Assembly (NCBI GenBank): GCA_964270895.1
Contig: OZ185440.1
DNA: 64,000 nt
Strand: one strand, 5' to 3'
Origin: Podarcis filfolensis
Lineage: Eukaryota
Below, in pieces: positions 37,360-58,224 of this stretch. The notes below the pieces were generated by a model. That model was not told where the DNA came from. It saw only the letters and a program-made list of their open reading frames with translations, and searched no databases. Within the stretch, counting starts at the first letter, position 1, and every line of letters starts with the position of its first letter. The translations under genes and the position numbers were made by a program.

Positions 37360-40300
37360 ATGCAACCAGGCTCCGAAGCGGACTGTCGGGTTCGCTGCAC
37401 CGTAGCGATCGAGCACCTGGGTGCTGCAGCAGCCCCGAATCGTGTGCTTCTCCGCGATGCTTGGGTCACGCTGGGCCGGGACGAGTTCCAGGAGCTGGTC
37501 CTGCAAGTGGCCAGCGCCGTCGGTCCGGGGCGCCCCCAGAACTTCCCCTTGCGGCGGGGTGAAGTGCGGCTGTTCACACGCTTCGTGAAGGAGGGGAAGA
37601 GCTCGGTGCAGCTCGGTGCAAACCACAATCACGTGCAGCTGCTGCTCTCTAATTGTCCTCCGGATCGGCTGCGCCGCTTCGTCCACACGCTGCGCATCAA
37701 GCACGCAGCCGCCCAGAGGGGAACCAGGCCTGTGGCCGAGCGAACGCGGCTTCTCGCTAGCCGACCGCGGACGTTTGACACGGTGAGCCCGGTGCAGACT
37801 CGCGACTTGCAGCAGGCGAGCGCCCGGCAGGCTCTGACTGACGTGACAAGCACCCCGCGGAAAGGTCAGCCCTTACGCTGCGCGTCTCGGAAGCGGATCC
37901 GGAGTGAGTCCATCGATGGGAAACAGGTGAGTCGGCTTCTGCCGGAAAGCATGATCTAGCTGGGAGTTGGATCTGCCCATAATAAAAGGATCTCTGGCCG
38001 TCCAGGTATTGTTGGACTCCATCACCCATGGTCTGGCAGTGCTGGCTGGGACTGCTGGGAGTTGGAGTCCAAGGATACCCGGAGGTTCCCCATACTTGGC
38101 ATAAGAGTGGTGGCTAGTTTCTGAGAAACCTGCTAATCCCAGATGCTGAAGTTGTGGTTATGCAAAGTGACAGATTCATGCACTCCTTAAGTACTTCAGA
38201 AACTCACTTAGCAAGTTTCATAACTGAGGCCCCCACAGAGTGGCCCTTTCTCCAATGCATTCTGGTCTTACTGGTAGATACTTGAGCGGAACCTCCAAAG
38301 TAGTATGGGCAAGGTCAAATTATTATTTTATTTGAGTGTAGGACTTCTTTGGTCCAATTGAAATTCAAAGAACTATCCCTCTGGATAAGAGGCATTCTCC
38401 TCTCTGGCTGCTGTAATCAAGAGAGATGGGATGGAAAGCTCTCATGAGCACTTTGGATTCAGAGGAGTTTGCCTTTTGGGGAATGTATTAAGTTCTGTTA
38501 TGCAGGCAGAATGTCATAGGCTCAACCCACATAATCTCCAGATGGGGCTAAAAAACACCCCTGTCTGAAGCTGCTCCCAATCAGTGGATACAGTACTGAA
38601 CAAGATGAGCCACTGGTCTGACTCAACATAAGGCAGGTTTCTGTGCTCTTTTCAGGTGGCTGAAAAGCAGCAGGTGAAGAAGACTTGGTCCATGTGCTCC
38701 CGAGCAAAACTCTCCCAGGAACAGTCAAGGGTGTTGAATGCAGTGCTGAGTGGGAAGAATGTTTTCTTCACAGGCAATGCTGGTGAGAGAAGAGGGTCAA
38801 GGAGGGTCTATGCGTTTGCAGGTTAGAGGTTGTAGTGGCTTCATCTACTATGGTGGGAATCTTGCATTCCTTCCACTGAACAAACCTGGGATTTAAGGTA
38901 TGTAAAGTTGGCGATTCTGATGTCTCTCTTTTTTGGGGTAGTGGCATGGGGCAGGTGGAGATTTATGAGAGGCAGATACCATTGAGTTGACTTTGATTTA
39001 CAATCTAGGTGTCACTTCTAAAACTGATCGAGTTTTGCATCTGCCTCTTGCCATTTAAATGGTTCCACTTTGAAGGGAAGTATGAATGGTGCTGGAGTAA
39101 TTGTAAAACTGAAATTTAGATTGTGTGCCTCTAAATACAAGGGTTCTCTCTGTAGGTACTGGGAAATCCTACCTGCTGAAAAAGATCATGGCCTCGCTGC
39201 CTCCAAACAGCACTTACGCCACAGCCAGCACAGGGGTGGCAGCATGTCAGATTGGTGGCACTACTCTCCATTCCTTTGCAGGTAACTGGGATCCTGGGAA
39301 AGGAGGGAAGTGGAAAAGGGCCTAGTGGTGGGTTACTGCTGACATACTCTTTCCCCTCTCCTTTGATAGGTATTGGGTCAGGAAAGGCCTCCCTACATCA
39401 GTGCATTGAGCTGGCTCAGAGACCCGGAATTCGGCAGCAATGGCTGAACGCCCGCCATCTGATCATAGATGAAATCTCTATGGTGGAGGGGGATTTCTTT
39501 GATAAACTGGAGGCAGTAGCTAGGTGGGTGGAGCCTTCCTTTTTGGGGATATTGCTGCACTTGCATTAATCCTGTGTGTACATGGCTTTGGGGAGGGTAT
39601 TAATAGGGCAGAATACAAAATATTGCATAGTTGTTTTAAAGTTCTGCCTAAGCAGGCACTTGATGCAATTCTGCAGCAAACAGTCTCACACTCACAGCTT
39701 TGCCCATGTATTCTCTTCAGTCTCACATCTAGTTTTGGTTAATGCTGTGGCCAGTGCCCACCCAGAGCCTCCAGACAGCATTGCCATCTCTGTGCTTCAG
39801 TCCTGTCTGTTTCCCATGCTCCTGTCCATGCACCATAGTTCTAATATGACTCCTTAAGTATAATGTGGTCCTAGAAGGGGGGTTTGCAGCCACAGAGAGC
39901 AGCAGAACTGAATTATATTTGTAACTCTGTCTTAGCGTAAGCAGAGCATGTGTAAGTGTTGCAAGGGAAACAGGAACAGGGAATCTTCCAGATGCAATTG
40001 GATTACAATTCCCATCAGTCCCAAGCAGCATGACCAACAGCCAGGCATCATGGGAACTGCAGTAGAACAACATCTGGAGGGCCACAGGCTTCTCATCCTT
40101 GGTCTAGGGTATTGCATTTATTTTCTCTTGGACCAGAATAAAATCAGCTCCCTGAAGGTGTCTCCATTCTCTTTTGGTAGAGCGGTCAGGAAATGTGAGG
40201 ATCCATTTGGAGGAATCCAGCTCATCATATGTGGAGACTTCTTGCAGCTGCCTCCTGTCAGCAAATCCTCGGAGCAGCCCAGGTTCTGTTTCCAGGTGTG

Positions 40301-43300
40301 CTGCTGTTGCTCTTTGTCACTGCATGCTCTTGTCACAGGCCGAGTTATAGTTTGATCAAAGGGTTTCCTTCACAGGCAAAGAGCTGGTGCAAGTGTATCC
40401 ACCTGAACATGGAGCTGACAGAGGTGCGGAGGCAGACTGACAAGGACTTCATTTCTCTTCTGCATACTGTCCGCCTGGGCAGGTGAGATGCCATCTTCCC
40501 CCAGCAGAATATCTGGCTGGGGAGATTCTAATCTCTTGGGGTGGAAGTCCTATGTCTAGAGAGACATCACCAAACATTTGAATGCTGATATAGCTGCTTC
40601 TGTCAAGTTGGCTGGCCTGCTCCAATACTTCCTTTAAACCCATTGCACTGATTGAAATTTGGGTCAAGTGCTCTTTGAGGAACTATGGAGAAATGCTGGG
40701 AGACACTGGGTTTGGAGGAATGGGGAATTTAGAGGTACTGTGTTTTCTGGGGTATTCCTTCACCTGCAAGCATCCTCGCTCACATACTAGCGATGCACAG
40801 AGTTGATCTCCATGTTTTGGTGCTGGTTACGGCCTCATGTTCTCATGGAAAGTAATTTGAATGGGCACAGTAGCAAGCTTGATAGTTCTTCTTGGTCTTT
40901 GATGTTTCTCATCAGATACAAATGTCTTCTTAATTTTAATTGTCCCCATTCAGATGCACAGAGGAGGTTACCAGGCAGCTAACTCTAACAGCTACCCATC
41001 GGGTGGAGAAAGATGGAATCTTGGCTACCCGGTTGTGCACCCACAAGGATGACGTGGAGCTCACAAATGCTAGAAGGCTGGATGAGTTGCCTGGTGAGAA
41101 TGCTGCAATGACTCCAACTGTGACAAGTAGCCCTTTCCTTTTAGAGACAGACTTTCAGCTAAGAGCTGGGAACCAGCACTTGGGAACTTGCCCTGCCCCT
41201 CTTCTTTCTGAATAAAACATCATGAGACCATTATAAAATTAGCCAATACATCCCACTGACACCAACAATTAGGTTTTCCAGTCCTGATATTCTTGCCACT
41301 GCTTTTTGATAGGTGAATACAAGGACACATTTATTTATTTTATAATATTTTCTTCTGTTGCTGATATCTGCAGAAATGGGAAACATATTATGATACGTAT
41401 TGTCTGGAATTCTGGAAGTTTACAGAATTATGCTTTCAGAATAGTGTGCAGAGCCCTAATACTTGGAGCTCACAACACCTGGGGCTGTGGAAGGATGAAA
41501 CAGAGCCCCCTACATGCAGCTCAGCTATTGGGAAGAAACCCTTTCAAAACACATCAGGTAGGAGGGATGCAAGTTTTTTACATCTTGTCTTCTAGGAGAA
41601 CGAAGGTCCTTCAAGGCAGTGGATAGTGACCCTGTACTGGTGAAAACTCTTGATGCACAGTGTCCAGTAAGCAGCAACATTGAACTTAAGCAAGGTGCCC
41701 AGGTGAGCATTGCCCAAGCGAGAGACAGTTCTTTAGTAGGCAATGGAATTTTGCTTTTTTATGGGGGAAAAGGTTTTTATGTTATCTACTTCTCACACTA
41801 GCGCCACGGACCTTTCCCATGGGGTCTCACAAAAGGGGTCCCCAACCCTAGGATCCTGGAGTTCTCTTGATGCAGAATATGACAGCATAAAGTGTTACAG
41901 GCAAATGCTGGCTGGATCTTACAGGAGCAGGCAAGCAGAGTAATTGTAAAATGAATGGTTTCTATAACAAATATCTATTATATAGCTTGTCTGAGGGAGT
42001 CATGGTGCCACTTACAGGTAATTGTTGACTGTAGCTTGGAATGTCAGAGCTATAGGCTTGGATGCATCTGCAAGCTATTTATATGTTCTCAGTATTTTGC
42101 CTGCTGAGTAATTCAGTTACTCCTTGCATTCTATTAATACTGATTCTCTCTTACAAATGCGTGGCTGGCTAGCACTGATTATAGCTTCTCAGGAATTGTT
42201 ACCTGCATTGCCATGGCTAGGTTCGACAGATCATCACATGACAGAACCTAGAGTATCAGCTGAGTGAAGTGATACTCTTATGGACCCTAGTGGCTGCCAT
42301 TTGCTTTCTTTGAGCTGGTTGTGCACTGCTTTCGATAACTTTTAAACCCTAAAACTGGGAAGTCAGCCCATGCCAAATGCCACAGAGTCCTTGACTTTTA
42401 AGAGCTGCACCCAGCTGTTAAATATGGGTGGGAAATCTGTGATGCTGTTTAACTGTGATTGTATTGTAACATTAAAGTTTAACTGAGGCCAGTTACCATT
42501 TTCAACACATTATTTACTTTATTAGATGGATTACTGGTTTTTTTCTGGTCTCATATGTATGTATTTAATATTTGACTCTTCGTTTGGTTATCTACCTTGT
42601 GTGCTGCCTTTTTGAAAAGCAGGATAAAAGTGTATACAATGAATAACATCCAAACAAGTATGAGGCTTTCCCTACCCGAGGAACAGGGTGGGGACATTCT
42701 TGTTTGTTTTCAGTGGCAGTTCTTGAGACTCTACTGTTAATGCTGACTATGTACAATAAAGTCGACTGACTGGACAGGTGAAAGCTAAGATGTTTTTCTT
42801 CATTAGTAATTTTTACATTCTTTCACTAGGTGATGCTTACTAAGAATCTTGATGTGTCCCAAGGTCTTGTGAATGGGGCTCGTGGAGTTGTGATTGGATT
42901 TGAAACAGAAGGAAAAGGTTAGTTTCTGACAGATGCACTTATCACCCATGACTGGGTGTTCTTCGGACTGTGTCTGAACTCTTCTAGATTCACAATGAAA
43001 CTTTGGTAGGTGCGTCTGCACTGTGCCAGAGGTGGAGGATTTTTTGAGACATAGTTGCTGTTCTTTGCCATCCAGTTTTTTGTACATGAGCTGCTATTCT
43101 ATTGGTGTCCCATTTACAGTAACTCAAGTGGATGAGCTCTAGGCTGCCTTGCAGTATCTCCTTAAAGAGAATAGATATTTGGGAGGTTACCTGGCCCTGA
43201 CTCCTGGGCATAGGAGATCAAAGTTCTGACTTGGCTCTCTTTCTACAGGGCTACCCAAAGTGAGATTTCTGTGTGGTGTCACTAATGTTGTTGGGTTGGA

Positions 43301-44909
43301 ACGATGGGTTTTTAAGGGACCAGCAGGAATTTATCTGAGTCGCCAGCAGCTGCCGCTGAAACTTGCCTGGGCCATTTCCATCCACAAGAGCCAGGTTAGT
43401 GATACATTGTGTGATATTCTGTACAAGAACTCAAGACAGTAAAAATGGTCCATAATGGGACGTCTTTAAGGAACTTGTGTTTATCTAGGTTTATCTGTAC
43501 TAAAGCTCCCACCAAATGTTGGATGTTACCAGTTGGACCCCACATCTATGCAGAATCTGTAAGAATCTGCTTATTTGTCGTCTTTTGCCCCAATTAATTA
43601 TAAGTCAGTGGAATCTAGGCAGACCAATCCTGTACACCAATCAAACTCAAGCTGTTTTCCTTGCAACATGTGGCTGTTCTAGAAACACTGGAAAATCACA
43701 CCACCCTGCAAACAAAAATATAAAGGGTGAGGGAACTGTGGAAATGTTGTTCAGCAGTGTTAATTCTTCCTATTTGCCTGGTACCCATTTTGCGGAATCA
43801 AGCATCATACATAACATATATAGGTCCTTTACTGTACTTGGGGTGCACATACTTATCAGAATAACTAGGGAGTATCTGCTTCCTGAATTTTTCTCTTTTA
43901 CTAGGGTATGTCTCTGGACTGCGTTGAGATTTCCTTGGCTCGTGTTTTTGAATTTGGCCAGGCTTATGTAGCACTTTCTCGAGCACGTAGCCTTGCAGGT
44001 CTTCGTGTTCTGGATTTTGATCCCAAGGTAGTGAGAGCCAATCCATATGTGTTGCAGTTCTACAGGCACTTGAAGAGAGAAAAATTTCTAACCCAGGTAA
44101 AGTGATAATCTGCCACTAGGCTACCATAACCATCTGCAACGTAGATATTCTGATTTTGTGTTGTATAAACTGCAAAGGGAGGAGGGTGGGAGAAAGGAAG
44201 GGCAATATAGGAGCCTGGAACAAGGGCCACAGGTGACTAATGGCATTGTGAATTAGGGATATCTGGCCACCATTGCTCTGTAACCCTGAAATAGACACAA
44301 TGCTCTCGAGCGATTATCTGTCTGCAGCCCTAATTGCTAAATGTATCTTCCCTACATTTCCCTCTCCAAAGAAAAATATACTGTTACAAGCCCATACTTT
44401 ATTAAAGAAATAAGTAGTGGAAGGTCATAGTGAATCCTTGCCCCTTCCTTCCATATGGCAGAAGTCTCCCCCCCCCCGGGAAGCCGATCAGGCACCTGGG
44501 GAAGCACACGTGCCTTGTGCCCAGGGGCGGGGCCAGCCAAGCCAGGGCAGGACGCTCTGTGGGGCCTCTGAGGATTCTGCCTGCCTCCTCCCACTCAGCT
44601 GCCCTACAGCTGAGGGAGAGGCGGCGGGCGGACCATTTGGGGCAGTGTGGCGCCCAAGCCATTGTGTCAACTCCCAGGAGACACACGTGGCTCAGGCGCA
44701 CTGCAGGCCCCGCGGTGAGTGCCGCCCGGCATTTTGTCACCCCCCTCAGTGGCGACACCTGGGGCAGCCCACCCCAACACACCCCTTCCTCCACCCCTGG
44801 GGGAATCATACAAAGTGTGAGTTGCTGTGTATAATTTGTTGCTTTTGTTCTTTAGGCTTTGCTGCACTCCTCTATTCAAGCTAATAAAGAAAATGAAGAA
44901 GCTGCCTGA
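37360..44909 (+). CDS. PIF1: ATP-dependent 5'-3' DNA helicase PIF1; 12 coding exons, 640 aa
   Basis: Exons 37360-37926, 38656-38782, 39156-39281, 39370-39523, 40181-40295, 40376-40482, 40954-41093, 41596-41702, 42830-42917, 43249-43394, 43905-44096, 44856-44909 (1923 nt). N-terminal PINT region, Walker [43 protein letters not shown] and [10 protein letters not shown]. Confidence 0.97.
38519..38648 (+). mobile_element. SINE 3' part abutting a PIF1 splice acceptor
   Basis: Reverse-complement match to the 36149-36328 family (ggtctgactcaacataaggcag); ends 7 nt before the exon at 38656. Confidence 0.6.
44440..44798. mobile_element. GC-rich MITE-like element in the last PIF1 intron
   Basis: GC island ending gcattttgtcacccccctcagtggcgacacctggggc...cccctg, a recurrent lacertid repeat end. 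The left boundary is approximate. Confidence 0.45.
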
Positions 44910-46478
44910 ACTTGACATATTTTTATTGCTCCTTGTACTTTTATTGAATCTACACCACTAAGTGGGAAACTTCTTCCACAGAGAATCAGCTCGTGGATTT
45001 TCTGCACTGCAGCTCCTGATACTTCCAGGATCATTCTGTTTTCTAGCAGTAGAACAACATCCTGGAAACATTTTCCATAGACTATCATAGTTCAAGAGAT
45101 GAACCTAAAAGTCATTTTTTTACCAAAATTTGTTATTAGAATGGCAGTAAGATGTTCTGCTATCATACCTTCAATAAGTCTTTTAATTCAAACATCTGCA
45201 TTGACAGTATTGTACCTATGGCAAGAGTTTGACACACTGAATAATAAAGAATGCACTTTATTTTTAAAGGACATAAAAGTGAATGAAATTGCTGCTCTCA
45301 GTGCAGCACATAATGCGTGTACGACATGCCAAGAGTCTGAGTTTACAAAGATGGCACACTAGTCTTCTAGGACTTGCCTGTTACTTACATTCTCTACAGG
45401 AGGCCTCTTCAAATAAAATAAATAAAGCAAAGATGCTAAATTGTAGTAATTTGTTAAACTATATATGCATGTTGCCAATTTAGGAGCTAGGAACTCCTTC
45501 CCAAGTTAACATGGTTCAGTTAAAATTCAGATTTTGAGAAGTGCATTTAATCTATGTTTGAAGTAATAATTACTTAAGGTGCTAGTTATGTTATGTTACA
45601 AAGTATGCTTTCTTTCCCCAGTCCCACCAGTTTATGGCAAATACTGCTATGAGCTGTTATGAGTCCAAGTATATCCATACTAATATCTCCTTAATAAAAT
45701 AAGTACTAATACTACATGGAGGGTTTACATTTTGACACAGGCTGCTGTAGCATTTATGCTTCTATGCTATAACATAGTAACTTTATCTTTGCATTCTTCA
45801 GTGCCTACAACTATAACAGTTCAGTATTGTGTTAGTGGTAGATGGGGGACATTTCTTCCAAGAAGATATACTGCATCATCAAGCATTGCTTAACAGTAAC
45901 ATTCCTAAGCATGTTATAAGTTAACTTTGCCTAGTTTATTTCGGTTAAAGCCTTCATGGCTTCTATAGCTCCTCAAAACGTATTGAAGGTAACCCCTGGT
46001 GAGCACGTTATAGGTAGAAGGCAAAAGGCACTTGGCAAGTAATATGAGATTATTACAGCTTTACAACTGATATTTTTCAGGTCCATATTTTTTTTTAATG
46101 GTTATTACAAAATAATTTGACTATTCTGTGACTCAGGAATGATATCCAACATCACTTATTATACTAACCACAATGATCTGTAGACCAAGGTCAAGATTAA
46201 CACTCAAGGCCATCTCTGAGCTGCTTCACAGCAACTGGCCAAATAAGATCTAGCAGCTGTCATGGAGTAGTAAGACCAGACTTCAGTGTACATATAATAT
46301 TAATACAAAACAAGTATACTCATGAGCCAAGGTGTAAAAGAGCAGGTCAGGCTGCTTAACCCCCATGCTATGATGAGGGGGATCATGGCTAAGGAAAGCT
46401 CAGCAAGCTTGTTTAGTCTTCCCTCACATGTTATGAGAGGACATAGTTCATTACTGGGCAGCACAGAATCCAGTTCCC

Positions 46479-49061
46479 TCAGTCAAAGCTTTCTTCTTTA
46501 CGTGCAAGGATAGCTAAAGGAAACAAGAATGGATTCAAAGGGCAGACACCCAGAGTCTTCCAGTCCATGGCAGAGGCAGAAGTTGCATCATCTTTGGAAG
46601 TGGTAGGAGAACTACTACTACTCTCCTGTTGTGGTAAGCCAGTAGTAGCTGGCTGCACATGTGGAAATAGCTCCCCATTATTGTTTACAGGCTGGTTGCC
46701 CTCTTTCATTCTGCTTCTTTCACCTGTGTAGTGGGTGTTCAACTCTGTGTAACATTTGTGCATGTGACTCTTCAGCTTCTTAAAGTCCAGAAAGCCCAGC
46801 TCTTCTGGCAGTGACAGTAGCAAATCTAGGACCACAGCTGACTCTGCAGAAAGCAAGCAAAATGTATGAGGAGAGTGGCTACACTCACTTTGGCAGAAAC
46901 ATAGGTTGGATTTTTTTATTGCCTGCTCTCCAGTTACAGATTCTGAAACTTCACCCTGCCTCCAACATGTGTAACAAATGAAGTAGTAAATTTTCTCACA
47001 TTAACAGCTAAGCTATTTTAGATTTTTAAAAATTACATCTTAGAGGTTAAGGATAACTTTCTATATAAGAAGTTTTATTTTAAAACCTGGAAATCTGATG
47101 AGAACCTTTTATCTGTTTTACATTATATGACAAGTTGCTGCTTCCTCTCACCTAGGAAAACTCTCCCTGTCTCCACGCTCACGGGCCACTCATATTTTCA
47201 CTGGGGGGTGGGGAGAAACATAACAAACAATTCCCTTCTGAAATGTTTTCCTTAGTCCCCCAAATCCCACCCATCATCCACAACAGTAACCTCAAAGGTT
47301 ACCCAACTATGCCCAGCAAGGTGGTTGTTGCTTTTAGTAGCACTAAATATGTTGGAAGTTTTGGCAGAAGGAGTACAGTTTTTGGCAGGACACATAGTGT
47401 TTCCAGTCCTAGGGGATGCTCCATTTCTGGGAAGCATTTTTAAGATTTAGTGTCCAGCCCTTCAGCTGAAATAGAACTCCACAGCAGATGACAAAAATGG
47501 CACAATAAAGAAAAAGCAACAGAATAAAAAGGAAGGGATGGAATGATTGCAAATAAAACTCAATAAGGCAGCTTCCATAAGGAGAAATGTTTTTGCCTGG
47601 CACCAAGAATACAGTAGGCATGCTGTAATAGATGTTTTGGTTACCTGGAGTCATATTCCAGTGCAGAAACATTTCTTCCAGTAGCTGCCTGTTATTTAAA
47701 TTCATCTTGGTCCAACACAAACGCCGACTTACCACCTGGTGGGAGTTCAGGTGCCTTACAGCCACGTGAGATCACAGAAAGGTACTTGTAGATCTTTTCA
47801 AAGTCCACATGGAACCCACTGTTTTCTGCAGGGGCTATTTCCTCTACATCTGATGATACAGTTGGTTCATGAGATTCTTCGTTGGATTTCCTACTCTCAC
47901 TATGAAGATTTTGGGATGAACATTGAGAATTCTTTATCTCCACTGACTTTGGAGGCACGGAATGGAGCAAGGTGAGTGGCTCAGTAGATGCAATTGTCCA
48001 AACCTAATGAGTAGAGAAAAAGTCACAATCAAGTATGGACTTTGTATGCCAAGCAGTCAGGGATTCGCTAGTAAACCAAATAAATTTCCCAGCATTAAAT
48101 CTATCTGAAAAGTTATAAAAGAACCAAGAGAACCAGGACAGAGCCATGTATTTCAGAGACATTTTGTCAGATATCTTAAATTACTACACCAAGAACAATA
48201 TCTATCTTATTAAGATCATGGAAAAGGTTACCTGGGAAAAAGCAGTTGCCACAGCATCCTCAAGGGGTCCTGTCAATTTCTCAGCTAACTCTGTCCATAT
48301 CTAAAAAAAAGGAAGTGTCAGTTGTGTGACTAACCCTTAGCTTATGTTGTGCCATATCACATTACCTACACTTTTAAAACTCTCATACCTCAATAGGTGC
48401 TGGAATAGGAGCATCCTTCTGTTTACGCTGGCGATACTGATATTGTTCCTTGACTGCTTCCTTTGCCACACGCTCTTTCAGGTGCTCCACAAATGCCATG
48501 ATCTGCAAGAGCAGCACAACTTAGGGGACGTACATGGAATGTTTTGGGAAAGACAGTATCCTACTTTCTGAAGAAATAAAAACTGAGTATTTCTTCAAGG
48601 CAGAAAGTTTGCAATTACTCCCCTTTAACTAGGACTTGCCAGGATGAATGTGTAGAAGGATTAAAAAAGGAGCATAGGTCTCTCCGAATTCATCCTCCCA
48701 AGTCGTCCCTTACGATTTATTTGCCAAGGCCACATAGCTCTCGTGGCTGACCAGAGATGGGAGTCCTCGTCTCCAAACCCTGCATGCTGGCCATCAGTCC
48801 GCCAACTCGTGGGGTTGTTAGGAAGCTCACAGCCCGACCAAGTTCGAATCCTGCCCTCCACCACGTGGCCACGCCTCAACCCACCTCTTCTTCATCCCTC
48901 GAAGGCAGGTACTTCTTCAACAGCTCGGGCCGCAGCGGACCCTGGCCGTGAGCTCTCAAGGCCCGAAGGAGGCGTCGCTTTTCTGGGTCCGTCCAAGCCT
49001 GGCTCGTGGGGGCCGTCCTGTAGCGAGCTGGGGCTGAACGCTGCCTTGAAGGAGGCTTCAT
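46479..49061 (-). CDS. SNAPC2: snRNA-activating protein complex subunit 2 (SNAP45); 5 coding exons, 331 aa
   Basis: Exons 48885-49061, 48389-48502, 48232-48300, 47733-48003, 46479-46843 (996 nt). MKPPSRQRSAPARY, PAPIEIWTELAEKLTGPLE, VDFEKIYKYLS, ESAVVLDLLLSLPEEL and GVCPLNPFL match human SNAPC2 as recalled. A non-coding first exon is implied (donor after 49219, acceptor before 49065). Confidence 0.95.
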
Positions 49062-49218
49062 GGTGCTGAGAAGAGAAAACAATAAAAAGCTAAGAACCTA
49101 AGAGGAGAAAACACGCCCAGGGGTGTCAATTGCCACCCGCCCAGCACCTATTCTCTTTAGCCCCTCACCTCTAGCCACCCGTTCCTGGCTTCTAATGCGA
49201 CACAACGCTGCTCGTTAC

Positions 49219-49502: not shown

Positions 49503-52500
49503 ATGGGACAGATCGCCCTTAAGTCTGGCTACATGTCTTGCTGGTCGGCCGGCGTCGCTTTGAGGATCCTAGTCCTATTGCTGTGCGATGGGCCCGGTAC
49601 GGAGAAGGGTGCTATTGAGGGCTCGGCTGCAGCCGGGTGTCTCCTGGAGGATGTGGTGGTAGCACATCAGAGCTGCAGTCGCTTGTGAAAAGAGCCAAGG
49701 GCACGGTCTCCTAAACGCCTGCCTGTTATACGAGTTTATTAATTCAATTAACATTCGAATCTGTCCACAAAAACGGATGGAATCGCCTCGCAGGCAGCTC
49801 AAAAACACAATATTCTGGACCGAAATGGCTCCTTGCATGGAGCTAGAGAGCTGGAGTGAAGTTCAATTTGAGACTCCTGAAACCGATTTTGTATATTGCT
49901 ATCATCCTGAGGTCTACCAAATGGTGTCAGGAGCAAGATCCTGGCTGGGGTGGGTGGACAGTACAGAGCCACATTGTAGAAAGGTGGCGGTGGGAACAGG
50001 ATTGGCACCCCCATTGTAAAGGGTAGTTCAGCAGGCTGAATTACTTGTTCCACCCCACAAACCATACATTGGAATAAACTACATACACAAATAAAATGTA
50101 TTGTAACAATAACTACATCAAAAAATAATATTAATAATTCAACATCTAAGTTACTGCAGTTTAGGGATTTTAACACAGAACTCTAAAACTGGCCAGCAGC
50201 AGCCAATAATGCAATCCTATGTGTACTCAGAAGGAAGTCCTGTTGAATTTACTAGGGCTTCCTCTTGGGTATGGTGTTAAGATTGCTGCCTACCTGCCAG
50301 GTGAGGAACACTGAGGCTGAGAGATAAGTGATTTCTACAAAGTCAGTAATGGCAGATATATATCAGTTTTATTTGCTGTTGTGGAAATACTCTGTGTCAT
50401 CCAGGGATTTGCCAGTATATCCCAATTTAACTTCAACTCTCCCTGGTCAAAACACAGGAGCTCTGAGGTGGGTTTCAGACTGCACAATGTACCATAAAGC
50501 TGGGAATTACCGCTTTATGAACACACAGATACAGCAGACAAGTCTGTAATGATACTTTCCAAAGGAGGCATCATGCTGAAGTCTTTGCTCCATTTCAGGC
50601 TGTGGACTTCACCTTGACTTGTCTGACAATGGAACTGCTGCAGGACTGGCACGTGTTAGAAAGACAGCTGGAGAGATGGGTGAGAATAATAAAGATCAGT
50701 TCCATTTAGCTGACACTGCACTAAGTAACATAAACAAGCAATAAATGGGGACATCATCTGATCAGCTCGATCCACTGTGGCCTTGTTTCATCCATCTTCA
50801 GTGGCCATCTGATCTGTGCCTTGAATCTATGGCCTTGGCACTGCACTCTGGCCACCTGAGCTAGCCAAGCGATAGATGATCATTCATGATTTGTGCCCAT
50901 TAACACAAAGCCCAACCAAGAACCTTGTTTTCCCATTGCCCTGTCACCAGTGCCAAATTGATTCTTCTGATTTATTCATTATTTACTAAATTTAAATCCT
51001 GTCTTTCCTCCAAAAAGCCCAAGCCAGAGTATACAGCTCTTCTACCTTCCATTAATCTTCACGGCAACCCTATGAGGTAGATTAGGCTGAGAGGTAGTGG
51101 CTGGCTCAAGGTCATCTAGGGAGCTTCATGGCCAAGGGAGGATTTGAACCCAGGTCTTCTTGGTTCTAGTCAGACATGCTAACCACTATACCTGCCTATT
51201 TTTTCAGACACCATCTTTGTCCACATTGGTGCCAAGGAAATTACTATCCCCTGCAAGTCTTCTGAGATGGATGTTGTGATTGGTATGAATCCCACCTACA
51301 ACTGGAGCCTGGAAAATGAAGGTTAGGCCTTATTCCTTGGGACTCTAGGATCTCTCAGTAGATGTCAGGGACAGATGTGTGAGGGAAAGAAGAGGATGGG
51401 TTACTTGGGAAAAGGACCTGTTGGTGTCCCAGGGCTGCCAATGTTTTTTCTAGAATGATCAGCAACAGAGATTTTTTTGCACCTCAGACTGATTTGAACT
51501 TTAGCACCCAAGATAATATTTCCCAAGCATTTTGTGTTGAGAATTAGTTTAGTCTTGCCTGTGCCCTCTGTGTCCTTGTGCCTTGGGCAAGAGCCCATGT
51601 TGTGTCACTCTTCCTCCTAATGACTGCTACAGAGAGGCCATTATGTGGCTAAAATTGGAGTGAGTGGGGATTGGGCCTTGTGGATTTCATTAAGGAGCCC
51701 ATGTTTACCTCTTATACCAGTTCAATCACTGAAGATGCATGAAAAGGTAACTTGCAAACACATCGATGCATCTGTTAAGCTTCCCAGATGTGAAACCAAG
51801 TTGACCTGAAACTGCCTGCCCAAATTAAAGTCTGGAGAGTTCAACAGATTATTCTTCACAATAGGCATATTGGCAAAAACATCAGAACTACTGGAAGTGA
51901 AATAGACCCAGAGCTCAGCTTTTTAAGGTTCCTGTTACTTAAAAGTTATGACTGAAGCAAGCTGTGAGACAACTTGCTTTTCCAAATCCAAAACTTGGTT
52001 GTAAAATACCGTAGTATCAGCATGTCACAAAATATTGACTAACTGTACCTGCCAATCTAAGCTATCCATATTACTATAATAAGAAAATACGTCGGGATTC
52101 AAGAAAGGTATTTTGTATGGGCATTCATGGCATAAGGGCAGCAGAAAATAATTAGACTCTCTCGATGCATCCATGTACCAATGAGCCTAGAGCCACATGA
52201 AGCTATAGAAGTATTAAAGGACGGGGTTTCTCTTGACCTCAGTATTGGTGCCTAAGCTGGTTGAAGCAGAACATTGTTCTTAGGCTGATTCTGCCCTCTA
52301 CTTTCAGGAACCCATCCCCTCAGTGGTGATGCTTCCCTGACTCTGCATGATTTTCATACTGATGACAGTGGACTGTATGTCTGCACAGTCTCCTACACCA
52401 CGGATGGCCAGCTCCATACTAAAACTTTCTATCACACAGTGGTGGGTGAGTGGATTCCAGATGTCTTGAAGGATAGTGAAACAAAGGGGACTGAACTATT

Positions 52501-55500
52501 TGACTAGATGGGTGATTGGCTGGAACCAGGAGGAAGCTAGTGGGGGGGGGGACGACATATATTGGGAGAAATGTGGGAGAAGTTTTGGCCTGTGGCCAGA
52601 CGCTGTGGCCAAACGTAGGTGGTTTCTCTCTGTTCTCCTGAGGATCCACTGTCTTTCTTAGGTAAAGGGACCCCTGACCATTAGGTCCAGTTGTGGCTGA
52701 CTCTGGGGTTGTGGTGCTCATCTCGCTTTATTGGCCGAGGGAGCCGGCGTACAGCTTCCGGGTCATGTGGCCAGCATGACTAAGCCGCTTCTGGCAAATC
52801 AGAGCAGAGCACAGAAACGCCGTTTACCTTCCCGCCAGAGCGGTACCTATTTATCTACTTGCACTTTGACGTGCTTTCAAACTGCTAGGTTGGCAGGAGC
52901 AGGGACCGAGCAACAGGAGCTCACCCTGTCACGGGGATTCGAACTGCCGACCTGATCGGCAAGTCCTAGGCTCTGTGGTTTAACCCACAGTGCCACCCGC
53001 GTGTTTACAATTTCTTTCCGTCCTCTTGAACTTCTTCATAGTGGACATGATGTGGAAAATGTGAGTTTTGCCGTCTTTTGAGCTCCTGTTTTTGTAGGAG
53101 AAGCTGCCTTCCAGATTCCCCTTCCTCTGCCTCTTTCCCCAGGCTACCACATACGTGCAGAGCTGCACGTCCTACTGCTTTTTCAGTGCAACTCTTGCGA
53201 TGAGGAATTGACACACGGATTCCTGAAGACCCTGCGAGAGCATCTGAGCGAGGTGGTGCACCACCTCCACTGTGAACTTCTGCTTGGCGCCATCAGCTGC
53301 TTCCCCACCATGGAGAAACCCTTGGATGAGTTCAACTTCCAGGTAGAGCTTGAAGGTCAGAGCCAAGAAATTCAGGGTGTTTCTAGAGGATGGCAGAGGA
53401 AGTCAGGTTGGCTGGGTTCAGTCACAGTTTGGGGAGGAAGTGAAGTTTGGAGCAGGAGAGGCTCGTGCAGAAAGGCAGGATTTCACCAGCTAGGACTGCC
53501 TACTGAAAACACCAGAAGTAAGTGTAGCCTCAGTATGTGTCTTTGCTGAGAACAGGCAGATTTTGGGTAAAGGTACATTCCCTTGGATTGGCTGGAGGAA
53601 CATTTCTTAAGCAGCAAGGGTGGCAATGGATATGTATCATGATCTGGAGGGTTGCGCTAAGTTGAATTAACATAATTAACTGCATTCACGCAAGCATCAT
53701 ATAGTGGATCTATTTTGCCATATCCTGGAATGAGGGTTTGGACTCTGTGTGCACTGATGGAAGAGCAAGCCTATTGGCAAAGGGACCGTAACATATTTGT
53801 CATTGTTTTCTAGTATCTCCTTTTGGGAAGGGCTGGGATAAATTCTGCTCCCCCAAGGCTGATGCACTGGAATTTGATTGTTATAATGGAGCTGTCTTGA
53901 GCAATCTGCAGCAGGTACGTCACCAAACCTCATCTCTCCCCTACCAGGAAATAAGTTTGCTGGGGTTTTGTACCTACATATGTTGTTGAGCTGCAAAGGG
54001 CAACCATATCTTTTATCTTCTGGAACAAGGCTAATGTGCATTGCTGCACATGGAATGGCTGGGGTTATTTACTTTGAGGCAATAAAAGCAAGAATCCCAT
54101 AGTTATGCATATTTTGAAGAAAGGATGGGTGCTTGCATTCTAGGCATTTACTATGGAATTGCCACATTTTGTTCACTCACTCTTGTGATGACCCTGCCAT
54201 CAGATTCTTATCCTTCTCTGTTTTCCCTGCACTCCTGTTTTCCTTCCTTTTTCAGAAAAACAGATCAATAACAAAAAGCAGACCTCCCAGTCTTCCTTCC
54301 CCCACTCTTGAACCACCCTATGCATCTCCCTACAGGCCGAGGAAGCAATAACCATATTCATGGAGAACAACAAACGTTTCCCCTTGGGAGAGGCGCCCAC
54401 CTCCCGCACCTCCTTTGTCAACACCTTTGTCAACTTCCTGGAGGGTGGAACATGCCTGGAAGGTTATGGACAGACCCCGGAGCTACAGGCACGCTGTCCC
54501 GACTGCTGTAGTGAGTGGAGCAGGTGATCCATGAGCAGCTGCCTCATCCCTCCTCAAACACTGCCTCCGGTCCCATAGGCTGCAGTGTTTGTTCACGCCA
54601 CTGGGAAGCCTCTCGCCACATTTGTTCTTAGCTGTCACCCCAGCCTTTGCAAACCCAGTGCCTTCCAGATGTTTTGGAACACAACTCCCACCAGCCCCAA
54701 ACATCTGGAGAGCACTGGGTTTGTAATGGCTCTCTTCTCTCTACCTTCCCTTCCTCTAGAGCAGTGTTTCGCAACCTTGGGTCTCCAGCTGTTTTTGGAC
54801 TACAACTCCCATCATCCCTAGCTAGCAAGACCAGTGGTCAGGGATGATGGGAACTGTTGTCTGAAAACAGCTGGAGACCCAAGGTTGGGAACCACTGTTC
54901 TAGAGTTTCACTGTAGCTCTGCCAGGTGCCATTGAGCTGTGTACACTTTAGTTTTCACCCCTTATGGAGCTATATTTCTCAGCACCCTTAACAAACTACA
55001 GTTCCCAATTTTTTTGGGGGGGGGGGAGTCACATGCTTTAAATGCATGGTGTGTACACAGCCCTTGGATCCGATCTGCAATTCCATCCAGTCAGAGCTAT
55101 TTTGTCCACCTGTTTAGCACATTGCGCTAAGCATGACTCCCTCGACTCCAGGAAGAGGCACCCTCTCCACAACTCCTTTGAGGAGCATGATTGAAAAAGG
55201 ATGCCTCTTGGGTAGGGCTCACATGGTATGTGGCCAGCTTTGAAATCCCTCTCTCCCTAAGCCCCCACCCTCCAGCTTAGCTGATGGAGGAATGAAACCT
55301 GTGTGCTGTCTGTATTTCAGGCTCTGCTCCTTTCGCTCCCCCCTCCATGCCTTTATCTGCCATTTTGCTTGACAGCCGCGTGCCCTCCTGGAACATATAG
55401 TGTGGCTGCAGCTGGAAATTGTGTTCCCTGCCCAAACGGATCATACAGCCTGCGCTATGGGGCAACTGTGTGCATTCAGTGCTACCACAACGGGTCAACC

Positions 55501-56948
55501 TTGCACCCTGCTGCCAGAACAGCTGCGGAGTGCATGAGCCCAGAAGGTATGTATCAGGTGGGAGACATGAGGAAGCGCTTCCTGAGAGACCTCTCTGGAT
55601 TTTCCAGCACTGGTTCTAGGACTTGGCATACTGAGAGTCAAGCTAGACACAACATAAAATATGTTCAAGGTTTTAAAAAAATGCACATAGCATCAACTGT
55701 GTGGCTGGGGCTGATAAGTATCATGATTGTAGGGGGTGAAGGGGGGGGATTTTAACTCTTTCCTTGCCACAGTCCTGAGAAAAATCCCTCCTCTGAAGTT
55801 GGGAAGATTTGCTGCAATGGGGAATTTCTTCCCAATAGAAATACTGGCTCCAGAGGAGGATTTACTTCAGTCCTGGATGCTGGACTTGAATTAGTTTCCT
55901 TGGTTCTGTATTTTATTTAAAAGGTGGCCCCTCATCTGGGTAATAGACAGAGTGATGTAGAAGTAAATTCTTACCACAAGATTCACAACAGGAGAGTTAA
56001 ATTTCACCTCCTGTGATCGTGTTAATTATCCATCTTCCCTAAGGTGATGCTCTGTATACTTAATGTCCCCTCAAACCTGTATGTTAAATCCAAAGACAGA
56101 TTTATCTTCAGATGGCTATGTTCCACCTCCACTATTGGCTGTTGCACTCATGTCCTACTTGCAGGCTTCCTGCAGACCTCAGTGAGAACAGGATGCTGAA
56201 GGAGGTGGCCCTTTGGCCTGATCTAGCAAGGCTTTTCTTGTGTTCTTAGGTACCTAAGAAACAGAGCTCCTTGACTGCAACCATATATATGAGCATCTAG
56301 TGAGGGAACAGTTCTGTGCATGTGTGAATTTGGTCCAAACAGTGTTTGTTTATACTGGCTGCCTATTTCCCTTTGGCCTTTCTTTCCACTGTGATACTTA
56401 AGCTGTGATCCTGTTTAACTTAATAGAGGCAGGTGCTACTGCTGGATAGGCAGCTTGGCTCTGGGTGCTGAGGAGAACTGGCACTCTTGAGTGATCTGTG
56501 TCTCTTTCCACACAGTCCCACCAACACATGGATTTCCTGCTCTGTTGGTGATCTTTCTCGTCCTGCTGCTTACTTGCCTCTGTATCATTGTGCCGTGAGT
56601 TCTGGGTTTTCTTCTTTCCTGTCTAAGCCCACTTCTGTAAAATTTGGTGGGCCAAAGAGATGTGTGGCTGGTCATTAAGTGAGGGCAGTGTCCCAAGAGA
56701 TCCTGAGAAATGACAGTGGCTGTGCAACCAGTTATCACAGATAATTGGGGGTGGGGGTGCCCAGGGAATGCCTCCACTACGGGATCATATATCTGCACCA
56801 CCAGTGCAGTGCAACTACCAAACTTTTAGAAGATATCTGAAGCCCTGTTTAGGGAAGCTTTTAATATTTAATAGGTTATTGTATTTTAGTGTTTTGTTGG
56901 AAGCCGCCCAGAGTGGCTGGGGAAACCCAGCCAGATGGGCGGGGTATA

Positions 56949-57030
<82 letters not shown>

Positions 57031-58224
57031 TTCCTGGCTTCTGGGACTAGAGTGCACCAAACAGGTATTGCTTTCATTCCACCTTTGCCCTTCCTCTGAA
57101 TACAGCCCCCTTGCATAGTTTCCCCACATGCCTTCTACAATTTGATTATTATCACTTTTCAGTAACCACCACCTGATCCTGGCCAGGATACCCCAACCAG
57201 CATACCCTAACCCAGGGGTCAGCAACCTTTTCCAGCCATGGGCCGGTCCACCGTCCCTCAGACCACGTGGTTGGCCGGACTATATTTTGAAAAAAATAAT
57301 AATGAATGAATTCCTATGCCCCACAAATAACCCAGAGATGCATTTTAAATAAAAGCACACATTCCACTCATATAAAAACACCAGGCAGGCCCCACTAATA
57401 ACCCAGATATGCATTTAAAATAAAAGGACACATTCTACTCATGTAAAAACACGCTGATTCCCAGACCGTCCATGAGAAGGCGATTGGGCCGCATCCGGCC
57501 CACAGGCCTTAGGTTGCCTACCCCTGCCCTAACCCAACAGAGTTCTTGGGCAAGGGGGATGTTACCACTTTCCTATGCATCTGGCTTCCATATTCCTTAT
57601 ATGTGTCCCTCCCTGTATTTTGCTCGTGGGGTTCTGGGCAACCAGAGCTGTATGGGAGGGGTGCCTACTAAGATCCACATGCCTTATGGTAATAAAGATT
57701 CCCTGTCTCTGTGCAGCTGCTGCTGGTACTTCCGTCGTAGAAGGAAGAAGAAACAGGATTCTTTTCCTAAAGGCGATGGTGAGACCAAGCAGGAAAAAGA
57801 TGTCACAGTCCTTGCTGTTCCGGACTCCCCAAAAGATGACTCTCCCCTGTTGCCTTCTATCACTTTGGAGAATCCTGACAAAGATGACTCTCCCCTGTTG
57901 CCTTCTCCCACTTTGGAGAATGCTGAAAAAGATGACTCTCCCCTGTTGCCTTCTATCACTTTGGAGAATCCTGACAAAGATGACTCTCCCCTGTTGCCTT
58001 CTCCCACTTTGGAGAATGCTGAAAAATATGACTCTCCTCTGTTGCCTTCTCCCACTTTGGAGAATCCTGACCAAGAAGGTGTCATGTTTCCAACTCCTCC
58101 CAATCCAGAGGAAGAGCCAGGTGGGGCTATTTTGCCACCCCTTTTTGAGCTAGAAGAGCAGCCTGTTATTGAAAATGTTGTGTTCCCATCATCCTCACCT
58201 GTCTCAGATTTTGAAAGTACATGA
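49503..58224 (+). CDS. Zona pellucida-binding protein (ZPBP/Sp38)-like type-I membrane protein; 10 exons, 557 aa (547 aa from the second ATG at 49533)
   Basis: Exons 49503-49596, 50599-50679, 51208-51321, 52308-52445, 53143-53355, 53814-53914, 54336-54510, 55376-55546, 56516-56594, 57717-58224; all GT-AG with an open frame. Signal-peptide-like N-terminus, Ig domain (C..W..DDSGLYVC), ZPBP-like Cys pattern TCLEGYG..CPDCCTACPPGTY..C..C..YGATVC, transmembrane helix, polybasic stop-transfer and repeat tail. Confidence 0.85.
50971..51192 (-). mobile_element. tRNA-derived (MIR/L2-tail-like) SINE
   Basis: caaccctatgaggtag...ggatttgaaccc...gctaaccactatacc, i.e. reverse-strand B-box and A-box. Confidence 0.7.
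52660..53002 (-). mobile_element. Full-length Sauria SINE (lacertid type)
   Basis: The minus strand reads gcgggtggcactgtgggttaaaccacagagcctagg...gttcgaatcccc...gatgagcacc...ggtccctttacct, the Sauria SINE head, body and tail. Confidence 0.92.
54762..54897. mobile_element. Hairpin hAT-type MITE
   Basis: Long inverted arms (cagtgtttcgcaaccttgggtctccagctgtttt / aaaacagctggagacccaaggttgggaaccactg); 8-bp TSD ctctagag/ttctagag. Degenerate relatives lie near 33890-34020, 37960-38090 and 54640-54720. Confidence 0.85.
56859..56950 (+). mobile_element. LINE 3' end (L2-like) with (AAT)n tail
   Basis: gaagccgcccagagtggctggggaaacccagccagatgggcggggtataaat directly followed by the AAT microsatellite. The clade is from memory. 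Confidence 0.55.
56949..57030. repeat. (AAT)15 followed by (ATT)13 compound microsatellite
   Basis: Read directly; forms a perfect 76-bp palindrome at 56955-57030. Confidence 0.95.
57213..57526. mobile_element. hAT-type MITE
   Basis: caggggt ... acccctg termini; perfect 8-bp TSD ccctaacc (57205-57212 and 57527-57534); internal duplication of the cccca..aataacccaga segment. Confidence 0.9.
57832..58071 (+). repeat. Coding minisatellite, 5 x 48 nt (16 aa), with a 96-nt higher-order unit
   Basis: Units KDDSPLLPSITLENPD / KDDSPLLPSPTLENAE / same as 1 / same as 2 / KYDSPLLPSPTLENPD; 57832-57927 is identical to 57928-58023. Confidence 0.97.

Follow-up and report, generated by a model that had tools for sequence, protein, structure and literature searches.

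A third, membrane-anchored member of the ZPBP family at a Podarcis filfolensis locus and across sauropsids

We analysed a 64,000-nucleotide stretch of the Podarcis filfolensis genome (contig OZ185440.1, assembly GCA_964270895.1; hereafter the window), which contains no N runs and carries on its plus strand, at 49503-58224, a ten-exon gene related to those for the zona pellucida-binding proteins ZPBP1 and ZPBP2. The gene encodes a third member of the ZPBP (Sp38) family with a divergent ectodomain, orthologous to neither ZPBP1 nor ZPBP2, and the window holds the Podarcis orthologue of what is a single-copy, sauropsid-wide gene. Its product is predicted from the sequence to be a type-I membrane glycoprotein, with a transmembrane helix, a juxtamembrane patch rich in Cys and Arg/Lys and a fast-evolving, repeat-prone cytoplasmic tail. 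Public automatic models of the gene with precomputed Pfam domains were known already; the new element is best described as its recognition as a membrane-anchored ZPBP member that is widely mis-named ZPBP2.

A ten-exon gene in the window

We confirmed a real, functional lizard gene of ten exons (Table 1). Every junction has canonical AG/GT splice sites, the exon phases are consistent, and splicing yields an uninterrupted open reading frame (ORF) of 557 codons, from an ATG at 49503 to a stop codon that ends at 58224. The final exon model was set by tblastn of the Podarcis raffonei protein LOC128415914, isoform X1 (annotated as ‘uncharacterized protein’), onto the window together with the splice sites; the 557-residue product is collinear with this protein and identical to it at 552 residues, five differing. 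It superseded a nine-exon in-frame model lacking exons 2 and 6 after comparison with homologues. A candidate exon at 56112-56181 (CPTC...), in frame in the nine-exon model, was rejected, being absent from orthologues and bypassed in the P. raffonei protein, which joins exon 8 to the transmembrane exon.

An earlier, sequence-only reading of the window had proposed ten in-frame exons and quoted a series of motifs, and both hold: all motifs are present on the plus strand in the order given. Its surmise that the gene might already exist as an uncharacterised LOC model was right, as the P. raffonei entry demonstrates. The further CxxC..C segment that it described is likewise present, as the end of exon 8 and not as an exon of its own, and its acidic Pro-rich tail of roughly 160 residues corresponds to the 162 residues following the basic patch RRRRKKK, the whole post-transmembrane part, from CCWYF onward, being 168 residues long.

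The gene is under constraint. The window DNA is ~97% identical to the P. raffonei locus; between these species the coding exons have diverged by 0.8% against ~3.2% for the surrounding 17.5 kb, with seven synonymous and six non-synonymous coding differences (pN/pS ~0.26, from small counts), so the gene model is not a product of chance. Across an ectodomain alignment of 40 orthologues 44 columns are invariant, 16 of them cysteines, and tblastx also recovers the exon series from loci of alligator, guinea fowl and tinamou.

Table 1. Positions and content of the ten exons, nearby repeats and neighbouring genes in the window
Feature	Position	Strand	Content and basis
Exon 1	49503..49596	+	ATG and signal-peptide-like leader with hydrophobic core ILVLLLC; GT donor, phase 1 fitting exon 2; 30 of 32 residues as in P. 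raffonei
Exon 2	50599..50679	+	Variable linker with one N-glycosylation sequon (NGT); tblastn with P. raffonei protein, AG/GT
Exon 3	51208..51321	+	First half of immunoglobulin (Ig) domain (first Ig Cys, YNW); AlphaFold strands 2-43
Exon 4	52308..52445	+	Second half of Ig domain (DSGLYVC); exon alone matches Pfam V-set (27.3 bits) and Sp38 (16.4 bits)
Exon 5	53143..53355	+	First part of alpha/beta middle domain (strand-helix-strand-strand); family-specific
Exon 6	53814..53914	+	Loop with two invariant Cys and start of long helix; tblastn, AG/GT, invariant W/C/C/Y columns
Exon 7	54336..54510	+	End of long helix and start of Cys-rich module (C..GYGQ..CPDCC); EGF_Sp38_C begins (protein residues 287-338)
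Exon 8	55376..55546	+	Remainder of EGF_Sp38_C and whole Ephrin_rec_like, including the CxxC..C end that ZPBP1 and ZPBP2 lack; Pfam 36 bits
Exon 9	56516..56594	+	79 nt; stalk and predicted transmembrane helix
Exon 10	57717..58224	+	Juxtamembrane CCWYF, RRRRKKK, acidic Pro-rich tail, conserved C-terminal VFPSSSPVSD, stop codon
Tandem repeat in exon 10	57832..58076	+	48 bp x 5.1, 16-residue units; Tandem Repeats Finder, 90% matches, no indels
Microsatellite in intron 9	56949..57030		Perfect (AAT)15 followed directly by (ATT)13
Short repeat	57318..57452		71 bp x 1.9
SNAPC2, first coding exon	48876..49082	-	Head to head with the ZPBP-like gene; Pfam SNAPC2 34.7 bits
PIF1-type helicase gene	39500..44925	+	Upstream; by correspondence with a related locus

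Residue 21, within the hydrophobic core of the signal peptide (exon 1, 49563-49565), is Arg here and Gly in P. raffonei, Podarcis muralis and Podarcis lilfordi; seven hydrophobic residues still follow it. The exon 2 segment varies among orthologues and is missing from the turtle model. Exon 5 is specific to the family: an exhaustive phmmer search with 66 of its residues matched 13 proteins, two of them 100% identical across the exon, and returned sauropsid family members, three repetitive proteins and nothing else. Beyond the gene, tblastx of the window flanks against the guinea fowl, tinamou and alligator loci gave no convincing synteny, and those loci have no recorded genes within 10 kb.

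Relation to ZPBP1 and ZPBP2

The ectodomain has a three-part architecture. An AlphaFold2 model built on the 40-sequence alignment (mean predicted local distance difference test score (pLDDT) 84.8; predicted template modelling score (pTM) 0.71) comprises an Ig sandwich (residues 1-88), an alpha/beta domain and a Cys-rich module, and the Ig fold is clearly present (Z 10.8 against the Ig domain of IL-1RAcP). In Pfam, the full protein matches Ephrin_rec_like (PF07699) at 34.1 bits (cut-off 23.1) and EGF_Sp38_C (PF20626) at 27.6 bits, or 29.9 bits with the ectodomain as query (cut-off 24); both models are matched by all 40 orthologues, and the 48-residue Ephrin_rec_like module covers model positions 1-48 of 48 at 34-36 bits. 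Several other Ig models match the full protein, all under their cut-offs. A search of the PDB by sequence and fold found no ZPBP structure, and an ESM Atlas look-up with a single exon was uninformative.

The middle domain has a modelled strand-helix-strand-strand-helix topology, and modelled separately (pLDDT 86.3) it had no Foldseek match at E 0.001 or better. Its other matches are just generic ferredoxin-like ones at Z 5.8-7.3, including ribosomal protein S6 (Z 6.8) and a MUC16-like SEA domain (Z 5.9), which fall inside the tool's stated background for unrelated models (best Z 7-8). A SEA-domain reading of this region is not supported, the SEA score lying within that background with neither a Foldseek match nor a Pfam SEA match.

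Fold comparison places the ectodomain with ZPBP1 and ZPBP2. Against the Swiss-Prot AlphaFold models, Foldseek ranks 1-8 are all eight ZPBP1 and ZPBP2 entries (chicken, human, mouse, rat and pig), with E 3e-18 to 6e-17, probability 1.00 and template modelling (TM) scores of 0.42-0.56 by query, over 296-309 columns at 18-24% identity; rank 9, thyroglobulin (E 2e-8), is ten orders of magnitude weaker. The ZPBP1 and ZPBP2 models end at ectodomain residue ~280-285 of 304, just past the YGAxxC motif and inside the Cys-rich module.

Sequence identity separates the lizard protein from both paralogues. It is 21-24% identical to the ZPBP2 entries and 18-21% to the ZPBP1 entries, and chicken ZPBP2 (Q6PVW7, 352 residues; 22%) is no closer than human ZPBP2 (Q6X784; 24%). 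Chicken ZPBP1 (Q6Q2W4, 320 residues) and ZPBP2, which are 21-22% identical to it, end at ectodomain residue ~280, whereas a further chicken protein, A0A8V0ZRT0 (488 residues, with a transmembrane helix), is 37% identical over the entire ectodomain. With this separate transmembrane-bearing orthologue beside its ZPBP1 and ZPBP2 entries, chicken has three genes of the family. That birds have both ZPBP1 and ZPBP2 is noted in a turkey transcriptome paper, which cites Lin et al. 2007 (PMC7647744). In the ESM Atlas, too, the present group has a cluster of its own, apart from those of ZPBP1 and ZPBP2. Judged by these sequences, one-to-one orthology would link the gene to neither paralogue, avian or mammalian, identity being equally low to both (18-24%). 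True ZPBP1 and ZPBP2 sequences were absent from the results of word-indexed protein searches, run with the single protein, with a ten-sequence profile and with the chicken Cys-rich region (E up to 10), all of which returned this family only.

These results bear out the assignment to the ZPBP/Sp38 family made in the sequence-only reading, through EGF_Sp38_C and a fold match over the full length of the ectodomain, and with it the proposals of a third member apart from both known paralogues (all three occur in chicken) and of a type-I membrane form, the predicted helix being conserved in 48 of 52 orthologue models. Its statement that human ZPBP ends after the YGA motif agrees with the ZPBP1 and ZPBP2 models. 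The gene, for which it suggested a reptile receptor, is not specific to reptiles, as birds, turtles and crocodilians also have it; overall, its interpretation is partly supported.

The gene is widespread in sauropsids and inconsistently named. We found orthologues in squamates, turtles and alligator and also in birds, where a ten-ectodomain profile matched ~60 entries of ~490 residues, chicken A0A8V0ZRT0 and a duck protein included; named relatives come from P. muralis, P. lilfordi, Pogona, Anolis, Sceloporus, Rhineura, snakes, Varanus, turtles and alligator. Database names range over ‘zona pellucida-binding protein 2-like’, ‘1-like’, ‘ZPBP1’, ‘ZPBP2’, ‘hypothetical’ and ‘uncharacterized’. The bird entries are mostly labelled ‘ZPBP2 protein, partial’, and dozens of them are orthologues of the transmembrane-bearing gene, not of ZPBP2, a mis-naming that can mislead expression and evolution studies. 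A literature search under the names ZPBP-like, ZPBP2-like and ZPBPL turned up no publication describing a ZPBP paralogue with a membrane anchor.

In a maximum-likelihood tree built from 27 ectodomains, the branching order agrees with that of the species: squamates fall on one side, the alligator, turtle and bird sequences fall on the other, and palaeognaths, Galloanserae and Neoaves are separate among the birds. This agreement indicates a single-copy orthologue in the sampled sauropsids. The searches found no orthologue in mammals, amphibians or fish, a weak negative: the exhaustive search used 66 residues and returned even bird matches near threshold, and the other searches need shared five-residue words.

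Membrane anchor, proposed role and alternatives

The predicted transmembrane helix in exon 9 has a Kyte-Doolittle 19-residue mean of 3.48, and the four orthologue models without an equivalent helix are truncated. Behind the basic patch the tail carries a net charge of -21 and 18% Pro. Four of its repeat units contain DDSPLL, a match to the [DE]xxxL[LI] pattern of acidic dileucines. A C-terminal FPPSSPVSD-type motif is common to squamates except snakes, and acidic FPxPP-like motifs, which bear an apparent resemblance to Ena/VASP EVH1 ligands, recur in squamates, turtle and alligator and not in birds. The tails also carry peptide repeats expanded independently by lineage: FPPPVNE-type in Sceloporus, EHGPEEA-type in Pogona and LEDTSK..PY-type in alligator and turtle.

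ZPBP1 and ZPBP2 have been treated as a two-member acrosomal family lacking a membrane anchor, to which the third member brings an anchor and a cytoplasmic tail. To our knowledge there is no settled account of how the inner acrosomal membrane retains ZPBP1. ZPBP1 is reported to originate in spermatids, to reside in the acrosomal matrix and at the inner acrosomal membrane, and to bind the zona pellucida; acrosome compaction is disrupted when it is lost (PMC7827414). Reasoning by analogy from ZPBP1/IAM38 and ZPBP2, we propose that the lizard protein would be made in spermatids and placed in the acrosomal membrane with its ZPBP-like domain facing the acrosomal lumen. There the membrane-tethered module might help to tether the acrosomal matrix, might bind zona pellucida (ZP) proteins of the egg coat (perivitelline) after exposure of the inner acrosomal membrane, or might do both. 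Short tail motifs could serve in sorting or in linking to the cytoskeleton, namely the DDSPLL acidic dileucines in Podarcis and the acidic FPxPP-type motifs in squamates, turtles and crocodilians, and the juxtamembrane cysteines may, by prediction, be palmitoylated. We advance spermatid expression and an acrosomal-membrane role tentatively, as an analogy that is less likely than not to hold.

Taken as a whole, the best explanation is probably a third, membrane-anchored, sauropsid-wide member of the ZPBP family, with the acrosomal role included at lower confidence. Found throughout the major sauropsid lineages, chicken among them, the gene would be a genetically tractable candidate for tethering of the acrosomal matrix or binding of the egg coat in birds and reptiles. 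Its interest is high solely if it proves to encode an acrosomal receptor or to preserve an ancestral form, and is otherwise moderate.

Several points weigh against this explanation. Distinctness from ZPBP1 and ZPBP2 is judged from chicken gene content, identity, fold and Atlas clusters, and the gamete role is proposed purely by analogy. Among the Pfam models, EGF_Sp38_C and Ephrin_rec_like stand above their cut-offs, but the N-terminal Ig model, Sp38 (PF07354), scores 16.6-17.8 bits in the lizard, under its cut-off of 23.1; among orthologues it reaches 23.0 bits in turtle and 28.7 in one bird, and 36 of 40 match at E 0.01 or better. The tail is poorly conserved: that of birds differs and shows no conservation with that of squamates, so any mechanism based on the tail would be lineage-specific. 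The probable SNAPC2 ATG lies ~445 bp from that of the ZPBP-like gene, and the two genes could share a broadly active bidirectional promoter. Finally, P. muralis and P. raffonei both have a predicted isoform, X3, in which the transmembrane exon is skipped and exon 8 is joined to exon 10.

A serious rival, in our estimate also less likely than not, is that the gene encodes a real membrane-anchored ZPBP-family protein with a somatic job, as a broadly expressed receptor of the secretory pathway, the endosome or the cell surface unrelated to gametes. Its closely spaced neighbour SNAPC2 encodes a general transcription factor, and the layout of Ig domain, Ephrin_rec_like/TNFR-like module and transmembrane helix is common among somatic receptors. 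Weak matches to the TNFR-like region of ELAPOR1, to SCUBE and to Ig domains of the IL-1 receptor family fit the same picture, as do the nearest Atlas clusters once Ig families are excluded, which are membrane mucins (score 0.74, a lead only); nor did we find literature linking the gene to sperm. Among full-length relatives, however, a role is known only for ZPBP1 and ZPBP2, both of them proteins of the spermatid and acrosome (PMC7827414), and nothing points positively to any particular somatic role.

It is considerably less likely that the main product is secreted like ZPBP1 and ZPBP2, with the transmembrane exon skipped in most transcripts and the anchored form a minor product or an annotation choice. 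The X3 isoforms of the two Podarcis species would suit this; skipping exon 9 shifts the frame so that exon 10 is read in the +1 frame, which is open for 206 codons (57533-58150) and gives a Leu/Cys-rich basic tail. That frame is open because the 48-bp tandem repeat lacks stop codons, and the minus strand of the same region also holds long ORFs (139-170 residues), so the frameshifted tail reads as a by-product of the repeat. The conserved C-terminal motifs, moreover, are found solely in the frame continuing from the transmembrane exon, and 48 of 52 models keep the predicted helix together with the Cys-rich patch beside it and the phasing of the exons. Orthologues have retained the helix over roughly 280 million years.

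That the gene is the sauropsid orthologue of ZPBP2, or of ZPBP1, as many database names say, is highly improbable. The source names (‘ZPBP2 protein, partial’, ‘zona pellucida-binding protein 1’) and the marginally higher identity to ZPBP2 than to ZPBP1 entries speak for it. The naming is, however, inconsistent, isoforms of a single Pogona gene being called ZPBP1, ZPBP2 and ZPBP2-like; the reviewed chicken ZPBP1 and ZPBP2 are far less similar to the lizard protein than is the transmembrane-bearing chicken protein, and chicken ZPBP2 shows no identity above that of its human counterpart. The gene also adjoins SNAPC2, whereas the ZPBP2 locus at 17q12-q21 adjoins GSDMB and ORMDL3 (PMC3374122). A gene-prediction artefact or decaying pseudogene, for which the one hint is a low-quality P. 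lilfordi model whose exon 7 contains a frameshift, is next to negligible against an intact ORF, canonical splice sites, exons conserved above introns and 16 cysteines invariant in 40 orthologues.

The membrane-anchored ZPBP-family protein may have older relatives. Three AlphaFold-DB cluster representatives, A0A803THP3 (430 residues), A0A4W3JR19 (364 residues) and R7T448 (465 residues), align through the Ephrin_rec_like end at 20-24% identity and continue for 117-148 further C-terminal residues. Their accession patterns suggest that they may be Anolis, elephant-shark and annelid proteins, and by their models they may be further, older long-form ZPBP-like proteins outside the present clade. Only these three representatives hint at a broader scenario, which we consider distinctly unlikely: that the anchored form is an old ZPBP architecture dating from before cartilaginous and bony vertebrates diverged, or perhaps older, kept in sauropsids and lost in mammals, and serving as an integral receptor of the inner acrosomal membrane that would hold bird and reptile sperm to the perivitelline ZP coat after the acrosome reaction.

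Comparison with known proteins

Outside the ZPBP family, likeness to known proteins is partial. Thyroglobulin, SCUBE1-3 and the mastigoneme protein Mst1 carry Ephrin_rec_like (GCC2/GCC3) modules that match the Cys-rich module in both sequence and fold, but the match is limited to the last 50-75 residues of the ectodomain and the remainder of those proteins is unrelated. The SEA-domain membrane mucins MUC12, MUC13 and MUC17 share a layout of alpha/beta sandwich, EGF-like module, transmembrane helix and tail, and we claim no membership among them.

Within the family, ZPBP2 has a collinear fold of Ig domain, alpha/beta domain and Cys-rich EGF_Sp38_C module (Foldseek E ~4e-18, ~300 columns); it differs in having no completed Ephrin_rec_like end, transmembrane helix or cytoplasmic tail, and in being a separate gene in chicken. 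ZPBP1 (sp38/IAM38; human Q9BS86, mouse Q62522, chicken Q6Q2W4) has the same three-part ectodomain and gave the highest TM-scores of all matches (0.49-0.56); its models show no transmembrane segment, whereas the lizard protein has a predicted anchor and tail of its own. Where ZPBP1 and ZPBP2 stop, the lizard protein completes the Cys-rich module and continues into a stalk, a predicted transmembrane helix and a cytoplasmic tail.

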